From the NCBI GenBank assembly GCA_976226885.1, contig OZ320318.1:73470001-73534000 (forward strand): DNA of 64,000 bases, given 5' to 3'. Below are positions 19,885 to 29,431 of this stretch, one piece after another (the first letter of the stretch is position 1; each line of letters opens with the position of its first letter). Below the pieces are notes generated by a model. It was not told where the DNA came from. It worked only from the letters and a program-made list of their open reading frames with translations, and did not search any database. This DNA is from Iphione sp. A-MEVVRFRX5. Lineage: Eukaryota. A program made the position numbers and the translations under genes.

Positions 19885-20146
19885 AAGCCGATTCCCCCTC
19901 GGTACCTTCGCCCCCTCCCCATAGCCTCGAAGGGGTGCGTACTGGGCGCGGCCTCCCAGTGGGCAGTTGTGCTGCTTCTCCCCCGTCAGTGTCCTCCGCA
20001 GTTGCCCTGCGGGTAACCCTCCGCGTCCCGGCTGCCGTGGCTGCTTTCAGCGGAGGGGGTGTTTGTTCCCTTTCAGGGCCTCGATTCGTCGGCCCCGAGG
20101 TTCCCCTCCGCATCCCACTTCTGACACTAATGTTGGCCTCCGCCAT
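19885..20146 (-). pseudogene. third, further truncated gag N-terminus
   Basis: Matches Gag up to EGESA, then runs into the A/T block. Confidence 0.8.
20112..20129 (-). other. 18-nt tRNA-Leu PBS with one substitution
   Basis: TAGTGTCAGAAGTGGGAT (TGG changed to TAG). Confidence 0.88.
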
Positions 20147-20344
20147 AATGAAGACGACATAAGTTGAGGAGAATGATGTTTATTGCTGAAGAGCTTCGAC
20201 ACAACTGACAGCGAATCCAACACACAACGCATTTATATATCAAATTGAAACCCTCCGCAGTATAAATAATACCCTCCGTGGTGCACCCTCCGCACCCTCC
20301 CCACCCTCCGCTAAATGGTCCTCCGCTTCCCCCCCTTCGCTACA
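20131..20344 (-). repeat. third LTR copy (214 bp)
   Basis: Near-identical LTR, preceded by a PPT and followed by a mutated PBS. Confidence 0.95.
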
Positions 20345-20360
20345 CTATCCCCTCCTTATT
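20345..20360 (-). other. polypurine tract of the miniature unit
   Basis: Identical AATAAGGAGGGGATAG before the third LTR. Confidence 0.9.
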
Positions 20361-20808
20361 AGTCCTCTCCTGTTTCCTCTTCCTCCTCCTCCTCCTCTTC
20401 TGACTCCTGGTGGGGGTCTTCCCCTTCGGGGAGTTCCTCCTCTCTTCCGGCTGGCTGTCCCTCCCCCAAGCCGGGGGCCCCCGCCGCCCCGGGGTCCTCC
20501 GCAGGGTGGGCCCCTGCCGAGCCATCTTCACCGCTCCTTGGGGGGGAAGCCAATTCCCCCTCGGTACCTTCGCCCCCTCCCCATAGCCTCGAAGGGGTGC
20601 GTACTGGGCGCGGCCTCCCAGTGGGCAGTTGCGCTGCTTCTCCCCCGTCGGCGTCCTCCGCAGTTGCCCTGCGGGTAACCCTCCGCGTCCCGGCTGCCGT
20701 GGCTACTTTCTGCGGAGGGGGTGTTTGTTCCCTTTCAGGGCCTCGATTCGTCGGCCCCGAGGTTCCCCTCCACATCCCACTTCTGACACCAATGTTGGCC
20801 TCCGCCAT
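20359..20808 (-). pseudogene. truncated gag N-terminus (149 aa) within the miniature unit
   Basis: Matches Gag up to EEETGED, then stops at the PPT junction. Confidence 0.85.
20774..20791 (-). other. 18-nt tRNA-Leu PBS
   Basis: TGGTGTCAGAAGTGGGAT, 1 nt after the LTR end. Confidence 0.92.
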
Positions 20809-20996
20809 AATGAAGACGACATAAGTTGAGGAGAATGATGTTTATTGCTGAAGAGCTTCGACACAACTGACAGCGAATCCAACACACAACGCATTTATAT
20901 AGCAAATTGAAACCCTTCGCAGTATAAATAATAGCCTCCGCGGTGCACCTCCGCACCCTCCGCTAAATGGTCCTCCGCTTCCCCCCCGTCGCTACA
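20793..20996 (-). repeat. 3' LTR of the full-length unit, shared with the first miniature unit (204 bp)
   Basis: Near-identical to 29209-29431 with fewer 9-bp repeats. Preceded by a PPT and followed by a PBS on the minus strand. Confidence 0.95.
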
Positions 20997-21012
20997 CTAT
21001 CCCCTCCTTATT
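20997..21012 (-). other. polypurine tract
   Basis: AATAAGGAGGGGATAG immediately before the LTR TG. Confidence 0.9.
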
Positions 21013-23518
21013 TTAATCCTGACCCAGGATACTGTAACATTCATGAACCTCAAATTCAACATCACCGGCGGTAAGAAACTCTAAACGAATGTCAAATTCA
21101 TCAATCTGGAGGCCTAGGGGCACCGGCCGCACCCCTCTATACCAGTCAGAGAAGAGAAACTCGGTCTCTCCCTCCGGGAAGCCGTCCTCCTCCCTCCTCT
21201 GTAAGCGGACACGGCTTTCAATTACTACACACATTCTACCCCGCCTCCGCGCCACTCGGCTCTTACCCACCGATATCAGAATTGTCCACCCCCGGGGGGG
21301 GTTGGGTTAATGAATTTACCGGCCTCCGGGAGGCCCACCGCAACCAGTCCGAGAGGGTAAGTGTTCGAGAATGACTGCCTTGATGGCCCCCGTTCGGAGC
21401 TGGCAACCGCGGGAGCCCGGTCTCCCCAGCGCAGGAGTTGGATTCTTCTTCCAAGCCTGTCGTCATGGGTTGGCTCGTTCGGGGAAGGGCGGCGCTGCCC
21501 CCTGCCCGACCGTTGGGGCCCGGTTCGGCGTGGGAGGAGGTCCCGTTACCACCCTTCCCGTGTTCGTCACCCTCCGCCGATTGGAGGGGCACCTTCCTTC
21601 CACCATGGCTAGGGCCCGGTTCGACCTGGGAGGTGGGCCCGCCACCGACCCTCCCGTGTTCGTCACCCTCCGCCGTTTGGAGGGGTACCTTCCTTCTAGG
21701 CTGGTCCGGATTTGGTGCGGCAGGAGGGGAGGTTTCGGTCCCTCCCCTCCCTTGTTCGTCACCCTCCGCCGATTGGAGGGGCACCTTCCTTCCGACGTGG
21801 GAGGTGGGCCCATCACCGACCCTCCCGTGTTCGTCACCCTCCGCCGTTTGGAGGGGTACCTTCCTTCTAGGCTGATCGGGATTTGGCGTGGCAGGAGGGG
21901 AGGTTTCGATTCCTCCCCCCCCTTGTTCGTCACCCTCCGCCGATTGGAGGGGCACCTTCCTTCTAGGCTGGTCAGGACCTGGCATGGCGGGAGGGGAGGC
22001 TTCGGTTCCTCCCCCCCTTTGTTCGTCACCCTACGCCGATTGGAGGGGCACCTTCCTTCCGACATGGGAGGTGGGCCCGTCACCACCCCTCCCGTTTTCA
22101 TCACCCTCCGCCGATTGGAGGGGCACCTTCCTTCCCGTTGGGCCGGGGGCTGAGGTGGTTTGCCCCCCAACCTTGCGGGGGGAGGGCTCGGCCTCCCCGC
22201 TTCTGGACCCGTCGCCTCTCACCGATGTCGGAGGCGCGCCAGGCTGACTCAAGGGGTGTTGATGCCTCGCCTCCCAATCCAAGACCTGGCGCGCAATTGG
22301 CCTCGACTTCTCCGCCTCCTCATGACCAATGGGAGTGAGGGGTTCGACCATGGGGTCTGCCTCCGCTTTCGCACCCTCCGTGTAGCACAGTTCTTGAGAC
22401 GGTTTCTCAGGGGTGGGCCCGTCCTCGCTGGACGGAATGGGGTGACCAACGAGGGAGCCAAAGGAAGACTCGCCCCCCTCCGCAGCCCCCAGCGGTTCAG
22501 CGCCCTCGGCGATTCCTCCCGGCTTCTCTGGGATCGTGGCGGGTAGGGCCACTGATGGAGGGTTCGCTGCGGCCAAGAGGGTGTCCATGTCTACAGCCCC
22601 GAATAAATCCTCCAGAACTTGGGCGGCTTGGTCGACCTCAGCTTGTGGCGCCTTCGGCGCCTTGCGTGCGGAGGAGACCAATGTCTGAATTGCAATACTC
22701 AGTTCATCTGGGGTTGGAGGCATCGTTGGAGTGCGGAGGAGTGGTGACGGTACCGACCTTGAATGGGTGGGAGTCTTGAGGAGCGGGGACATGGCCTTGT
22801 CTGGGAGTCCTCCGCTCTTGTCTGCGGCGAGCCCGGCTCGGGCAACCATCGGCCGACCAGAGGGGGCTTCCGTTCGCTGCCCCCCTTCCAGTAACTCCGG
22901 CGTGCGGAGGGCTGGCTTGGCGGGGGTCAGCCCCAGGCCTTTCCCCGGGGTGACCGGGCTGGACTCCGACCGACTGGGCTGGAGATCCGCAGTTCGTATG
23001 GCGGCCTCCAGGTCTCCCGCGGCGGACAGCAGCTTCTCCAGGGCGGTAGGTGTCACGGGAGGGTCAGCGGTCTCGGTGGCGTCGAGGCGGTTGATGGCCT
23101 CTTGGAGTCTGGCCTTCATCCCCTGGGGCGAGGTGGGGGAGGCGGGTGGCTCACCCTCCCCCTCCTCCTGGACAAGCTGGCGGACGCGAGGGTGCGTGGG
23201 GGGGTCGACCGCTGCCTCCGCCTCCCCAAGCTTCCTCTTCTTCGTCAAGGAGCTAGTCGCCGATGCCTTGGTGGTAGCGCTCCCCTCCGCGCTCGCCCCC
23301 TCCGTCTTCTTGGTGGGCATCAAGCTTTTAATCGTCACCTCCCCCGCTGGAGCGGCCTTGACAGGGGTAGACCTCGTCACCCTCTTCTCAGGTTCGACCT
23401 CCTTTTTCCGTCGGGCAGTCGTCTTGTGCACCCGGACCCGAGCCGCCGAGGGAGACCGGGAAGCGGGAGCACTCTCCTCCGACGAAGTCAGGATAGCCGG
23501 TCTCCGCCTCGGGCTCTC
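21013..23518 (-). pseudogene. long accessory ORF of unknown function (disordered region, 7 repeats, short C-terminal putative domain)
   Basis: ORFs 22031-23431 and 21263-21985 share one frame, split by GAG>TAG at 22031-22033. Removing one base of the G8 run 21294-21301 joins ORF 21013-21270, which ends next to the PPT. Confidence 0.65.
21562..22133 (-). repeat. 7 coding tandem repeats (RKVPLQ[S/T]AEGDE)
   Basis: CCCTCC-GCCG(A/T)TT-GGAGGG cores at 21570, 21666, 21762, 21837, 21933, 22029 and 22104, with spacings 96, 96, 75, 96, 96, 75. Confidence 0.93.
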
Positions 23519-23521
23519 TCA

Positions 23522-24352
23522 TCACCCTGTCGAGGTGGACGCCTGCGGTGAAGTTGGTGGCTGGCGTGGGGGTCCCAATGACGGAGTGGGTAGCGGTGGT
23601 GCAGAGGGCTCACTGTCCCACGAGGAGGGAAGTCTGGCTTTCTTTCTCTTGGGTGGAGTGGGGGTACTGTCCCGGTGGCGTGACCTCCGGTGTTCGTGCG
23701 ACCCCTCAACCCGCTCTCGGCTCCTCTTCTTGTCCTTGTGGCGGCCACCATGGCGAGATCTGGCTGAGTCGGACGTCCCGCTTCCCGTCTCCCCCTCGGC
23801 CTCTTTGGGGCGGCGGAGCCGCCCCCGCAAGGTGGTGGACCCTGGCTTCTTGTAGAATTCGTAATATTCTTCCTTCATTCGAGGTAGCAGTTTCTGTGCC
23901 CCTCCCTCGGCCAGGTGGGTCTTCGAATCCAGGTGCCGCCTCAGATTGTCCTTGCGCATAAAGATCTTCCCATCGCACTTCTCTCCTCCACATCCCCACG
24001 CAAAGCCCTCAGAGCTATGGGTCTGCACGTGTCTCTTAAGATTGTCCTTGCGGTCGCAGACCTTCTCGCAGAGTGGGCAGGGATATTCGTCTTTCTGGCT
24101 CTTCCTCATGGTGTCGAATGATGAGCATCCCCTGGGGCGAGTGTCACTTATATTCGAATCTGGCGCCGCAGCATCCTCCGCTCGATTTTCATTGGTTGGT
24201 AGCTTCCCTCCGCATCGCAGCCCCCTCCGCATTCCTCGTCCGCCCCTTTGATTGGCCACTTCGTTTTGAACTCCAACGGCTTTAGGTTTGCGGAGGTCCT
24301 CTGCCCTCTCCTCAGTTCTCCCTCCGCTTTTCTCGATGCGGAGGGTGGCCAC
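23522..24352 (-). CDS. two-C2H2-zinc-finger segment, in frame with and contiguous to the integrase C-terminus
   Basis: CPLCEKVCDRKDNLKRHVQTH and CGGEKCDGKIFMRKDNLRRHLDSKTH (23915-24079), followed by a basic/Ser-rich region. No stop lies between VVHADLLKP and this ORF. Confidence 0.85.
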   Translation of the reverse strand: MATLRIEKSGGRTEERAEDLRKPKAVGVQNEVANQRGGRGMRRGLRCGGKLPTNENRAEDAAAPDSNISDTRPRGCSSFDTMRKSQKDEYPCPLCEKVCDRKDNLKRHVQTHSSEGFAWGCGGEKCDGKIFMRKDNLRRHLDSKTHLAEGGAQKLLPRMKEEYYEFYKKPGSTTLRGRLRRPKEAEGETGSGTSDSARSRHGGRHKDKKRSRERVEGSHEHRRSRHRDSTPTPPKRKKARLPSSWDSEPSAPPLPTPSLGPPRQPPTSPQASTSTG

Positions 24353-24379
24353 GACAGCGCTATCTTCCCCCCGGGCCCC

Positions 24380-25420
24380 TGGCTTCAGGAGGTCGGCGTG
24401 TACTACTCTTTCTCACCGCCCCTTCTTGATGCGATAGACGGCGGCCGAGAGCTGCTTGCTGACCGGTATTTGCCTTGCCAGTATCGCTGTAACTTAGGGG
24501 ATAGCCCCGGCTTTTTCAACGGCAGGAAAAGGTACACCTCCTCCCCTACCGCGAAGTTTCGGGGCCGCACTCGGTGGTTGTACCAGTCGGTCTGGCGCTG
24601 GATTCCCTCCCCTAACCACTGGTTGGCCAGTTGATGGGCTTGTTTCATGCGTTCCATCTGCTCCTGGACATACGGTCCAACCTCCGCTCCTCCCTCCTGT
24701 GGGGGGGCCTCCGTAAGCTGCCTCGACGGGGAGTGTAGTCTCCCGATTCAGGATGAGGAAGTTTGGGGAGAATCGAGTGGTTCGGTGGGGGGTTGCCCGA
24801 TACGCAGCCGTTACAAACGGTAGCCGAAGATCCCAATCACGTTGATCTTCCTGGACCATCATTGCGAGCATATGCTCTAGCATTCGGTTGAACCTCTCCA
24901 CCACTCCATCGGCTTGGGGATGGTAGGGGGTGGTCCTGGTCTTCTGAAATCCGCAACCACTGAGCAGCTGGGCCACTAGTTCTGCCTCAAAGTTCCGGCC
25001 TTGATCGCTGTGGATTACTCGGGGAGGCCCAAACCGACAAATCACCTCCCTCATCAACACCTCCGCAGTAGCCTCCGCGGTTTGTTCCTTGAGCGGGAAG
25101 GCCTCCGCCCATTTACTAAAATGATCCCCTACCACCAGGATGTACTTGTTGGCCTGGGGCGTCCTCGGAAATGGTCCGGCGATGTCCACGGCTACCAACT
25201 CCCAAGGTCCCGGACTCTGGCGATGCTGTAGTAGAGTTCGTTTCCTCCGACTGGGCCCCTTCGCCTCCAGACAACGCGGGCAGGCCGTTCCCCACACAAT
25301 CAAGTCCCGAGTCATTCCCGGCCAGAAATACTTCCCCCGGAGGAGACCAGCCATTTTCTGAGGGCCAAGATGGCCACCCATGACTCCCTGGTGAATTATC
25401 GTCCAGCACTCCTTTCGTAG
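24380..25420 (-). pseudogene. pol: Pol part 2: integrase, disrupted by two compensating frameshifts and a TGA
   Basis: HHCC (H...GGHLG...CPRC), VAVDIAGP, IHSDQG, GVVERFN, then SPKLQRYWQGKY and VYRIKKGR*ERVVHADLLKP. Lesions: +1 at 24701-24707, -1 near 24463, TGA at 24413-24415. Confidence 0.92.
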
Positions 25421-28049
25421 GGGGGGGGACCCAGGCTTGCCACCAGGCCCTTCCGTCTTCATGTTCCCACCTCCGCACGATCAGTCCTCCGCGAGCCTGT
25501 AGTCGTTTCCACTCCCCTACCAGCCGTCGCTCTTCCCAGCTGGTCTCTGTCTTGACCTCGGGGGGGCCTTCCCCCCGCTCCAGCCGTCCTAGTAACTCGC
25601 CCCCAATCGGGTCCGCTAGGGTGTCTCTAGCCATGGCGGATGATGAAGGAGCCTCCGCCCTCACTTCCGCAGTCAGAATAGCAGTCGTCTCCTCGGGCTC
25701 TCGTTGGCCGCACTGTTTACATGGCCGCCTTGACAACCCGTCGGCATTGTTGTGTACCCTCCCTGGCCAATGTATCACTTCCACCTCTCGACAGGCCAAT
25801 TCTTCTAGCCAGCGCGCCATTTGGCCCTCCGGCTCTTTGAAGTTCATGAGCCACCGGAGGCTCCCATGGTCTGTGCGAACCACTACCTTCCTTCCGCTAA
25901 CGTAGGTCTTGAATTTCCGGAGGGCGAAGATCACAGCTAGCAGCTCCTTCCGAGTTACGCAATAGCGTTGCTCGGGCTTGGTGAGGGCTCGACTAGCATA
26001 CATCAGCACTCTCTCCCGGCCGTCCTGCTCCTGGGAGAGGACTGCACCCACTCCTTCGCCGGAAGCGTCAGTGTCCACGATTAGGCGCCCTTCTGGCTGA
26101 GGGTATCCCAGGATGGGTGCGGAAGTTAGGCAATGCTTAAGATCTTCAAAGGCGGCTTCCTCTTCACTTCCCCACCAGAACTCCGCTTCTTTGTCCAACA
26201 GTCGATGAAGGGGGGCGGCTCGCCGCGCAAAGTCTCGGATAAATGAGCGGTAATAAGAGGCTAAACCCAGGAAGGCACGGAGACTGGCCAAGGTCACCGG
26301 AACTGGCCACTCTGCTACGGCTTGAACCTTCTCCGGGTCAGGACGGACCCCACCTGCACTAACGATATGGCCGAGGTACTGTACCTGTTCTCGGAGGAGC
26401 TGGCACTTGCTAGGTTTCACTTTGAGACCGGCGGCCTCCAGCCGTTGGAGCACCTCCGCCAGGCGGTCACACATCTCCCCCACCGTCTTGGCCATGATGA
26501 TGACATCGTCCAAGTACACAAGGCAGGAGTCCCCGATCAGACCGCGGAGGACGACATCCATCAATCGTTCGAATGTGGAGGGGGCGTTACAGAGACCGAA
26601 GGGCATGACCCGGAACTGGTAGAGTCCGGATGGAGTGCAAACGGCCGTCTTCGGGCGGTCCTCTGACCGGACCGCTACTTGCCAATACCCAGAAGCCAGG
26701 TCGATCACCGTGAAATACCTGGCTCCGGCCAGCGCATCCAGGGTGTTATCCACGCGTGGTAGGGGGTAAGCATCCTTGCGCGTTCGTTCGTTGAGCTGTC
26801 GGAAGTCTATATGAAACCGGCATTCCCCACTCCGCTTCTTGACCAGTACCACCGGTGAGGCCCACGGGCTGCTGGAGGGTTCCAACACCCCTTGTCGTAC
26901 CATTTTTTTGATCTCCGCCTCCGCGATGCGCATTTTATGGGGTGGAAGATGTCGGAACCTCTGTCGCACCGGGGCGGCCTCCCCTGTATGAATTTCATGC
27001 TCAACGAGAGTGGTGCGCCCTAGATCGGTACCCTCCCTCTGGAAGGCGCGGCGGTGAGTCCAAAGCACCTGCCTCAGTCGCTCCCGCTCTTTCACCGTGC
27101 TTCCCGAGGGCAGCTCGGACATTAGCTCTTTGATTAGCCGTGCGTAGAGGGACTCCTCTGCCTCACCCTCCTCCTTAGCTGGTACCTCACCTAATGCCCT
27201 AGGTTCGCCTGGATCGTCTTCCCTCCACAGTTCCTCCTCGACCTCCTCCGCCTCCGCTACCTGCGTCCCCCTCCGTAGCCAGACCTCCCCCTCCGCCACA
27301 TTCAGACAGAGGAGTTGGGCCCGTCCATTGTCCACGTTAGCCACTGCATGTGGCACTCGCACCCCCGCTCGCTGTTCCAGCGCGGGGACCGGTCCTACAA
27401 TCCATTCGCCCCCTTGGGCCTGACCGATGGTCACCGAGATAAGGGTCTTGGCCCGGGCTTCCAAACAGGTGTCCTGTGCCAGCTGTACTCGTTCTGGTCG
27501 CGCTCTGTTCTTCCTGATGGTGATTGTCCCGGTGGCTGTGTCCACTACAGCCCTCCTCCGGCGGAGGGCGTCCATCCCCAGGATGGCAGCTTGCTCCACC
27601 TCTGCAACCAGGGCTTCCAACGTCCAGGGTGTCTCCCCGAAGACCACCGTCACCTCGGTCCTCCCCACACAGGGGAAGGGCGCCCCGTTGGCGGCAATGA
27701 TGCGTCGCCCTGGTAGGACCGTGACAGGCAGGCAGAGGGCCTCCGCCGTTCGCACCGCGAGGATGGTGGTTGAGGCTCCTGTGTCCACCAGCCAGGTCAT
27801 TTCTTGGCCTCCGACCTTCCCTCGTAGCCCTAGCGCCCGCCCCCTTAGGACTGTGAGGGCTTCGTCTTCCTCCTTCGGCGGCATGGCCGCCCTCTTCTGG
27901 AGCCAGTCATTGAGCTGTTCCTTGGGGATGGACTCCTCCGCCGCCTCTCCCTGTCCCCTTACAGGGAGGGCGGCACGTCGTTTTCCGCCGGCTTCGGCCG
28001 AGAAGGGCAATCCCGTTTGAAATGCCCCTCCTTCCCACAGCGGAAGCAC
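25420..28049 (-). CDS. pol: Pol part 1: aspartic protease, reverse transcriptase, RNase H (in -1 frame to gag)
   Basis: LVDTGAS (PR); WASPVVLV, DAYPLP, MPFGLCNAP, YLDD (RT); VDTDAS, ELLAV, ADGLSR (RH). The frame switches at the G9 run 25420-25428. Confidence 0.95.
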
Positions 28050-29224
28050 CCGGTTCGACTGCCCGTTGCTGGACCTTGTTCCAACCGCCTCTCTAGCTGG
28101 TCTAGCTTCTTAGCGAGTCGGTCCAAGAAGTCGTCTTCTCGCTTGGCCCGGGCGTCTCCCTCCACCGTCGACAGCGAGTGGCAGCCAGCCCTTCCGCCAT
28201 AGGCTTTCCCGGTCGGTTCCCTTTCCCTCCGGCCCTGGAAATAGGCCTCCCCAAAGAGGGCCTCCGATACTGCCGCGCGGAAGTTGGCCACCCTCTGCTG
28301 CACCACCCACTTCCTCACCTTCTCATCCACAATCGCCTGGATGAAGCTATCCCGGCAGAGCTCATCTGCCCATTGCCCTCGTACCCCCGGGTATGCCCGT
28401 TTCACCAGGTTCTCCACTTCGTCGGCCAGTTGGGATAAGTCGGCCTCGCCTTGCTTGTGGGTCTTTAACTGCTGTTTAAATAGGTCCACCTGATCTGGCG
28501 ACCGGAAGCGACTGCGGAGGGCCTCCACGAACTTCTGGTAGGCCCGTGGATCGTGGACCCGCACGCCGGAGTTCCGCATGGTGGTCCGTGCCGGACCACG
28601 GAGACTGATTCCGAGATGAATGGCCTTCTCCTTGGTTGTCCATCGATTGGCGGCGGCGACGAGGCCGAAGTGGTGAAGGTAATCGTCAAGGTCCGTCGAG
28701 CCATCGTATGGCTCGGGCTTAGCTCTACCCTTCCGGGGCCGCTCATCTGAGTCCTCTCCTGTTTCCTCTTCCTCCTCCTCCTCCTCTTCTGACTCCTGGT
28801 GGGGGTCTTCCCCTTCGGGGAGTTCCTCCTCTCTTCCGGCTGGCTGTCCCTCCCCCAAGCCGGGGGCCCCTGCCGCCCCGGGGTCCTCCGCAGGGTGGGC
28901 CCCTGCCGAGCCGTCTTCACCGCTCCTTGGGGGGGAAGCCGATTCCCCCTCGGTACCTTCGCCCCCTCCCCATAGCCTCGAAGGGGTGCGTACTGGGCGC
29001 GGCCTCCCAGTGGGCAGTTGCGCTGCTTCTCCCCCGTCGGCGTCCTCCGCAGTTGCCCTGCGGGTAACCCTCCGCGTCCCGGCTGCCGTGGCTGCTTTCT
29101 CCGGAGGGGGTGTTTGTTCCCTTTCAGGGCCTCGATTCATCGGCCCCGAGGTTCCCCTTCGCAGTCCACTTCTGTGGGCGTGGGTTCGAATCCCACTTCT
29201 GACACCAATGTTGGCCTCTGCCAT
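27959..29224 (-). CDS. gag: Gag (421 aa)
   Basis: Capsid-type PEPYDGSTDLDDYLHHFGLVAAANRW...LGISLRGPA and a C-terminal CFRCGKEGHFKRDC zinc knuckle. The ATG lies inside the LTR. Confidence 0.93.
   Translation of the reverse strand: MAEANIGVRSGIRTHAHRSGLRRGTSGPMNRGPEREQTPPPEKAATAAGTRRVTRRATAEDADGGEAAQLPTGRPRPVRTPSRLWGGGEGTEGESASPPRSGEDGSAGAHPAEDPGAAGAPGLGEGQPAGREEELPEGEDPHQESEEEEEEEEETGEDSDERPRKGRAKPEPYDGSTDLDDYLHHFGLVAAANRWTTKEKAIHLGISLRGPARTTMRNSGVRVHDPRAYQKFVEALRSRFRSPDQVDLFKQQLKTHKQGEADLSQLADEVENLVKRAYPGVRGQWADELCRDSFIQAIVDEKVRKWVVQQRVANFRAAVSEALFGEAYFQGRREREPTGKAYGGRAGCHSLSTVEGDARAKREDDFLDRLAKKLDQLERRLEQGPATGSRTGCFRCGKEGHFKRDCPSRPKPAENDVPPSL
27980..27986 (-). promoter_or_regulatory. candidate -1 ribosomal frameshift heptamer G_GAA_AAC
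   Basis: It lies in the gag/pol overlap after the zinc knuckle, pol is in the -1 frame, and no in-frame ATG precedes it within the open pol frame. Confidence 0.55.
29159..29207 (-). other. extended primer-binding site: complement of 49 nt of mature tRNA-Leu 3' half including CCA
   Basis: Plus strand reads T CGCAG T CCAC-TTCT-GTGG GC GTGGG-TTCGAAT-CCCAC TTCTGAC A CCA. This is the anticodon-stem 3' side, variable arm, T arm, acceptor strand and CCA of a class II tRNA-Leu (CAG-type by CGCAG). Confidence 0.9.
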
Positions 29225-29431
29225 AATGAAGACGACATAAGTTGAGGAGAATGATGTTTATTGCTGAAGAGCTTCGACACAACTGACAGCGAATCCAACA
29301 CACAACGCATTTATATAGCAAATTGAAACCCTCCGCAGTATAAATAATACCCTCCGCGGTGCACCCTCCGCACCCTCCGCACCCTCCGCACCCTCCGCTA
29401 AATGGTCCTCCGCTTCCCCCCCGTCGCTACA
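29209..29431 (-). repeat. 5' LTR (223 bp)
   Basis: Minus strand reads TGTAGCGAC...GGCCAACA. It contains GCGGAGGG repeats, a TATA (plus 29311-29318) and AATAAA (plus 29257-29262). Confidence 0.95.

Follow-up and report, generated by a model that had tools for sequence, protein, structure and literature searches.

The window analysed here is a 64,000-nt stretch of contig OZ320318.1 (positions 73,470,001 to 73,534,000, forward strand; assembly GCA_976226885.1) from Iphione sp. A-MEVVRFRX5. It contains a GC-rich block (about 60% GC, against a host background of about 40%) from roughly 19885 to 29431, which is a Ty3/gypsy (Metaviridae) LTR retrotransposon on the minus strand, primed by tRNA-Leu and followed by two small units that share its LTRs. 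Pfam hits to gag (CCHC), protease, RT, RNase H, and integrase lie in that order on the minus strand, and the same order holds in a second copy described below. In window coordinates, the features are as follows.

29209..29431 (minus strand), 5′ LTR of 223 nt (TG...CA), with a TATA box, AATAAA, and the first in-frame ATG of the gag ORF at 29224
29208 (minus strand), single-nucleotide spacer (T)
29190..29207 (minus strand), canonical 18-nt PBS, complementary to tRNA-Leu positions 59-76
29159..29189 (minus strand), 31 further bases complementary to tRNA-Leu-CAG positions 58 down to 38, covering the T loop, T stem, variable-arm hairpin, and 3′ strand of the anticodon stem
27959..29224 (minus strand), gag ORF of 421 codons (capsid-like region and CCHC knuckle), reading through the LTR end, the PBS, and the tRNA tract
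25116..28049 (minus strand), pol ORF encoding protease, RT, and RNase H
24494..25462 (minus strand), integrase ORF, in another frame from the RT ORF in this copy
21263..24352 (minus strand), 3′ region with a C2H2 zinc-finger ORF and two ORFs without Pfam hits
20793..20996 (minus strand), second LTR of 204 nt, preceded by the polypurine tract at 20997-21013; it is the 3′ LTR of the full unit and the 5′ LTR of small unit 1
20345..20791 (minus strand), small unit 1, with an exact 18-nt PBS (20774-20791), the first ~413 nt of gag, and a direct join to the polypurine tract
20131..20344 (minus strand), third LTR of 214 nt
19885..20129 (minus strand), small unit 2, with a PBS (20112-20129) and 227 nt of gag, truncated at 19885 against AT-rich DNA

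The three LTRs run from TGTAGCG to GGCCAACA, and AAGGAGGGGA precedes the second and third. Their U3 part holds a 9-nt repeat, GGAGGGTGC (window 29340-29400, 20930-20960, and 20280-20310), whose copy number differs among the three LTRs of the array. The join of gag position ~430 to the polypurine tract in the 447-nt small unit 1 occurs nowhere else in the genome, indicating that the small units are a local rearrangement and not a mobile miniature (TRIM-like) family. The initial annotation had described an exact 18-nt PBS in both small units; this is correct for the first, whereas the second has one mismatch (TAG instead of TGG).

A tRNA-Leu-CAG tract adjoining the PBS

The host genome (1.18 Gb, 89 contigs) has 11 identical tRNA-Leu-CAG genes and one variant, with the variable arm CCACTTCTGTGG. 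Window positions 29159-29207 match the last 46 gene bases plus CCA without a mismatch (49/49, positions 38-76; E = 3e-15), whereas the 18-mer alone is expected 0.02 times per window by chance. The T loop is read here as T54 T55 C56 G57 A58 A59 T60, which places the canonical PBS at positions 59-76. The tRNA-Leu-CAA genes of this genome carry introns after position 37 and share the last 18 bases with Leu-CAG but differ in the T loop and variable arm; an 18-nt PBS cannot tell the two primers apart, and the longer tract therefore names Leu-CAG as the primer that was copied. ARAGORN found no tRNA in the window, only positions 38-76 are present, and no tRNA gene flank accompanies them, so the tract does not have the features of a tRNA gene, a tRNA pseudogene, or a tRNA-derived SINE.

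Relative to the short form, the net insertion is 27 nt (29163-29189), with an additional G-to-A change at 29159 that converts GCGG to GCGA; in effect, 31 tRNA-derived bases replaced 4 element bases. Because 27 is a multiple of three, the ORF that opens at the U5 ATG (29224) stays open for 421 codons, and its translation is as initially annotated, GVRSG IRTHAHRSGL RRG in place of GVRSG M RRG/WRG. In short copies, a second in-frame ATG straddles the PBS end (GGGAT|G, codon 12), and the insertion destroys it, such that one Met codon becomes ten codons. The U5 ATG has A at -3 and G at +4 and is the second AUG after the presumed transcription start. Placing the tract in frame within gag nevertheless assumes that translation starts at this ATG, and in some related families the same short ORF closes right after the PBS, so conservation of the ATG may also reflect LTR-end function.

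Distribution of short and long forms in the genome

A BLAST search with 341 nt around the PBS scored 40 of 487 candidate family copies, of which 38 span 314 nt, the short form, and two span 341 nt, namely the window copy and a copy on contig C19 (C19:24880880-24881220; contigs and individual sequences are given by our own C and L labels). Within this sample, the short PBS is not a feature of the small units only, as eight short copies examined from contig C1 all continue at least 1.5 kb into gag-pol, collinear with the full element. The most divergent copy (L040, 83-86% identical) and related families with similar LTR ends are also short. All short copies read GAT followed by GCGG, GCAG, or GTGG, whereas both long copies read GCGA, whose A corresponds to tRNA T38. 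The tract is therefore a gain within the family and not an ancestral state lost by the small units, which keep GCGG/GTGG and cannot be deletion derivatives of the long form. The small units belong to the same young subgroup as the long copies (98.1% identical to the window copy) but are short-form siblings.

The C19 copy is a full-length LTR-internal-LTR element, 97.3% identical to the window copy over 7.5 kb. Homology starts exactly at the LTR start, the flanks are unrelated, and the C19 copy has its own LTR pair with four CpG-type differences, indicating a separate insertion and not a segmental duplication; it is flanked by ATAT on both sides, although in AT-repeat DNA. Its two LTRs also differ in the copy number of the U3 repeat. 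Both long copies keep the 421-codon gag ORF, whereas four of eight short copies have earlier stops, and both are broken elsewhere, in different places. Downstream of integrase, the family has a long extra ORF of 773 codons in the C19 copy (L083 2983-5304, minus strand), broken into 466 and 240 codons in the window (21263-23431), with 96-nt tandem repeats at window 21553-22134; neither Pfam nor a protein atlas search gave a lead to its identity. The integrase ORF of the C19 copy continues into a C-terminal C2H2 zinc finger (L083 5751-7316, minus strand), which lies in a separate ORF in the window copy (23522-24352).

Similar tracts are found elsewhere in the genome. Exact 18-nt PBS sites with CCA number 698 for Leu-CAG/CAA and 4,696 for Leu-AAG, of which about 6 and about 13, respectively, continue into the T arm (0.3-0.9%), or about 19 of roughly 5,400 sites in all. 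These tracts derive from three isoacceptors (CAG, CAA, and AAG), lie in several element families, and have different junctions. In L004, which is 99.3% identical to a normal copy of its family, 17 tRNA bases replace 21 element bases, including the ATG that opens its gag-like ORF, at a CCACA microhomology. In L011, an element of another family (L011/L054, C17:42542428), the Leu-CAG tract runs to T38 and is joined directly to the RT coding region, with 1,785 nt (gag and protease) missing relative to a normal copy (L088); it is 99.5% identical to that copy downstream, so the event looks recent. L064 carries an older tract derived from Leu-CAA that also ends at T38, and L059 (C10:39265279) carries a Leu-CAA-type tract of about 35 nt and has a 21-nt inverted repeat flanking the PBS region that could form a stem around the primer site. 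For Leu-AAG, whose host gene reads ...TTAAGGC ACCAG..., tracts end at C38 in L061/L084 (one event, two copies), L069, L070, L078, and L087; L085 and L058 end there or one base further, L081 and L073 end 2-3 bases further, and L076 and L086 end earlier. L061 (C15:39163847) and L084 (C22:9197452) lie on different contigs and share the same junction, followed by a second partial PBS-like TGGTGGCAGC, making them a second candidate for a propagated long-form element. L060 and L069 have different LTR subfamilies, yet both carry a Leu-AAG tract followed by homologous gag-like coding sequence (LKCMRADVKTLE...), either because the event is old and inherited across subfamilies or because of a junction hot spot. 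A further BLAST hit of the tRNA at C10:35509033 is a truncated tRNA-Leu pseudogene with a T-run terminator and no CCA, and not a PBS tract.

In total, about 9 of about 15 independent events end at position 38, one base before G37, in three isoacceptors whose anticodon loops differ but which all have G37. By our rough estimate, and not a formal test, this would be vanishingly unlikely if endpoints were spread evenly over some 40 positions. The clustering is not complete, however, as two or three Leu-AAG tracts run 1-3 bases past position 38 and four end earlier, at 30-36 nt.

Inferred mechanism and its relation to known read-through products

Only plus-strand synthesis on the primer tRNA gives the observed orientation and contiguity with the PBS. 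In published work, m1A58 makes the normal stop after 18 nt, synthesis continues without it, and m1G37 is general for tRNAs that read codons beginning with C other than CAN. We therefore infer that reverse transcriptase passed A58, copied the T arm, the variable arm, and the 3′ strand of the anticodon stem, and halted at m1G37, which was followed by an aberrant second strand transfer. We consider this explanation likely, and it supports and extends the initial annotation, which had proposed read-through of an unmodified or bypassed A58. The modification states in this organism rest on general knowledge of tRNA and on position only. The base opposite position 58 is the correct T in every tract except that of the C19 copy, which has A. 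Because bypass of m1A appears usually to be error-prone, this favors primers that lacked the methyl group, and the single A may be a bypass scar or a later mutation.

The 31-nt tail had no partner on the minus strand. Its last 16 bases match the PBS end plus the next four element bases (TGCG) at 13 of 16 positions, because the tRNA carries the 9-mer CAGAAGTGG twice, 27 nt apart, a spacing that equals the net insertion. The tail could therefore have primed in a slipped register, as the initial annotation had suggested in proposing that the transfer annealed by the internal repeat. This remains an inference and would require extension from a terminal A:C mismatch. In other families, the tail found other microhomologies, which produced the replacement in L004 and the deletion in L011.

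A primer already cut in the anticodon loop would also account for a common endpoint, as run-off at the 5′ end of a 3′ tRNA half, although passage of A58 would still be required. The endpoint does lie where tRNA halves are made, and for the intron-bearing Leu-CAA, position 38 is also the first base of exon 2. We consider this unlikely, however, since three isoacceptors with different loop sequences share the endpoint next to the one base they have in common, G37, and the few tracts that run 1-3 bases further fit incomplete modification better than a fixed cut; loop nucleases that cut after pyrimidines would probably give other ends, such as C34/A35. Entry of the tract at the DNA level, by gene conversion or recombination with a tRNA-Leu gene or pseudogene, is very unlikely. 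Although 15 of the 18 PBS bases are identical to the gene and could seed pairing, the homology is very short, and this route gives no reason for tracts from three isoacceptors to end at position 38 or for junctions that delete element sequence. Likewise, direct repeats 27 nt apart could in principle mediate deletion of an ancestral long form, but such a deletion, whether repeat-mediated or exact, would leave ACT-GCGA or GCGA and would not restore what the short copies have. Given also the predominance of short copies in the sample and the short form of the outgroup and sister families, this reading is contradicted by the data.

Whether the two long copies descend from one long-form element is less certain. 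They are each other's nearest relatives among the ten copies compared (98.4% against at most 97.7%) and both keep the gag ORF, but outside the event they share only one exclusive substitution in 1.7 kb, and the tree does not resolve them as a clade. The observed event rate, applied to several hundred family copies, predicts one to a few events in this family, and a fixed stop plus the adjacent slipped register would repeat the same junction. We thus favor inheritance, although common descent is not demonstrated and two independent identical events remain a real, if less probable, alternative, in which case there is no evidence that the long form can transpose. We speculate, tentatively, that read-through tracts form a genome-wide fossil record of the modification state of primer tRNAs in germ-line cells, their start recording primers that lacked m1A58 and their end mapping the next hard stop, m1G37, and that at least one such product, with 49 nt of complementarity that fixes the primer to Leu-CAG and adds nine Gag codons, stayed able to transpose and founded a small lineage.

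The tracts identify the actual primer, which otherwise needs an experiment such as the one done for HTLV-1, and their shared endpoint gives a sequence-only readout of where reverse transcriptase is blocked on native tRNA. They also show a simple route by which tRNA sequence becomes part of an element and possibly of its Gag protein, and the pattern can be looked for in any genome with many LTR elements. In our literature searches, we found no report of chromosomal tracts, of their common endpoint, or of a full-length element carrying one, although this is not proof that none exists. The process itself is known from plus-strand strong-stop products of HIV-1 on tRNA-Lys3, which stop at m1A58, psi55, m5Um54, and ms2t6A37. 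There, the 18-nt boundary is set by m1A58 and the next hard stop is the modified base 37, but those are in vitro or cell-culture products described as failing plus-strand transfer or integration, whereas here the products were integrated in a germ line, in a Ty3/gypsy element, on tRNA-Leu, and with m1G37 as the presumed second stop. The present tracts are in chromosomal copies, one kind of which is full-length with an open gag. Finally, conserved retroviral complementarity to tRNA-Lys3 up to position 55 (Fukuda et al. 2021, PMC8599865) likewise extends beyond the 18-nt PBS, but that extension is 4 nt, conserved, and thought to be functional, whereas the extension described here is 31 nt, rare, and derived within the family.
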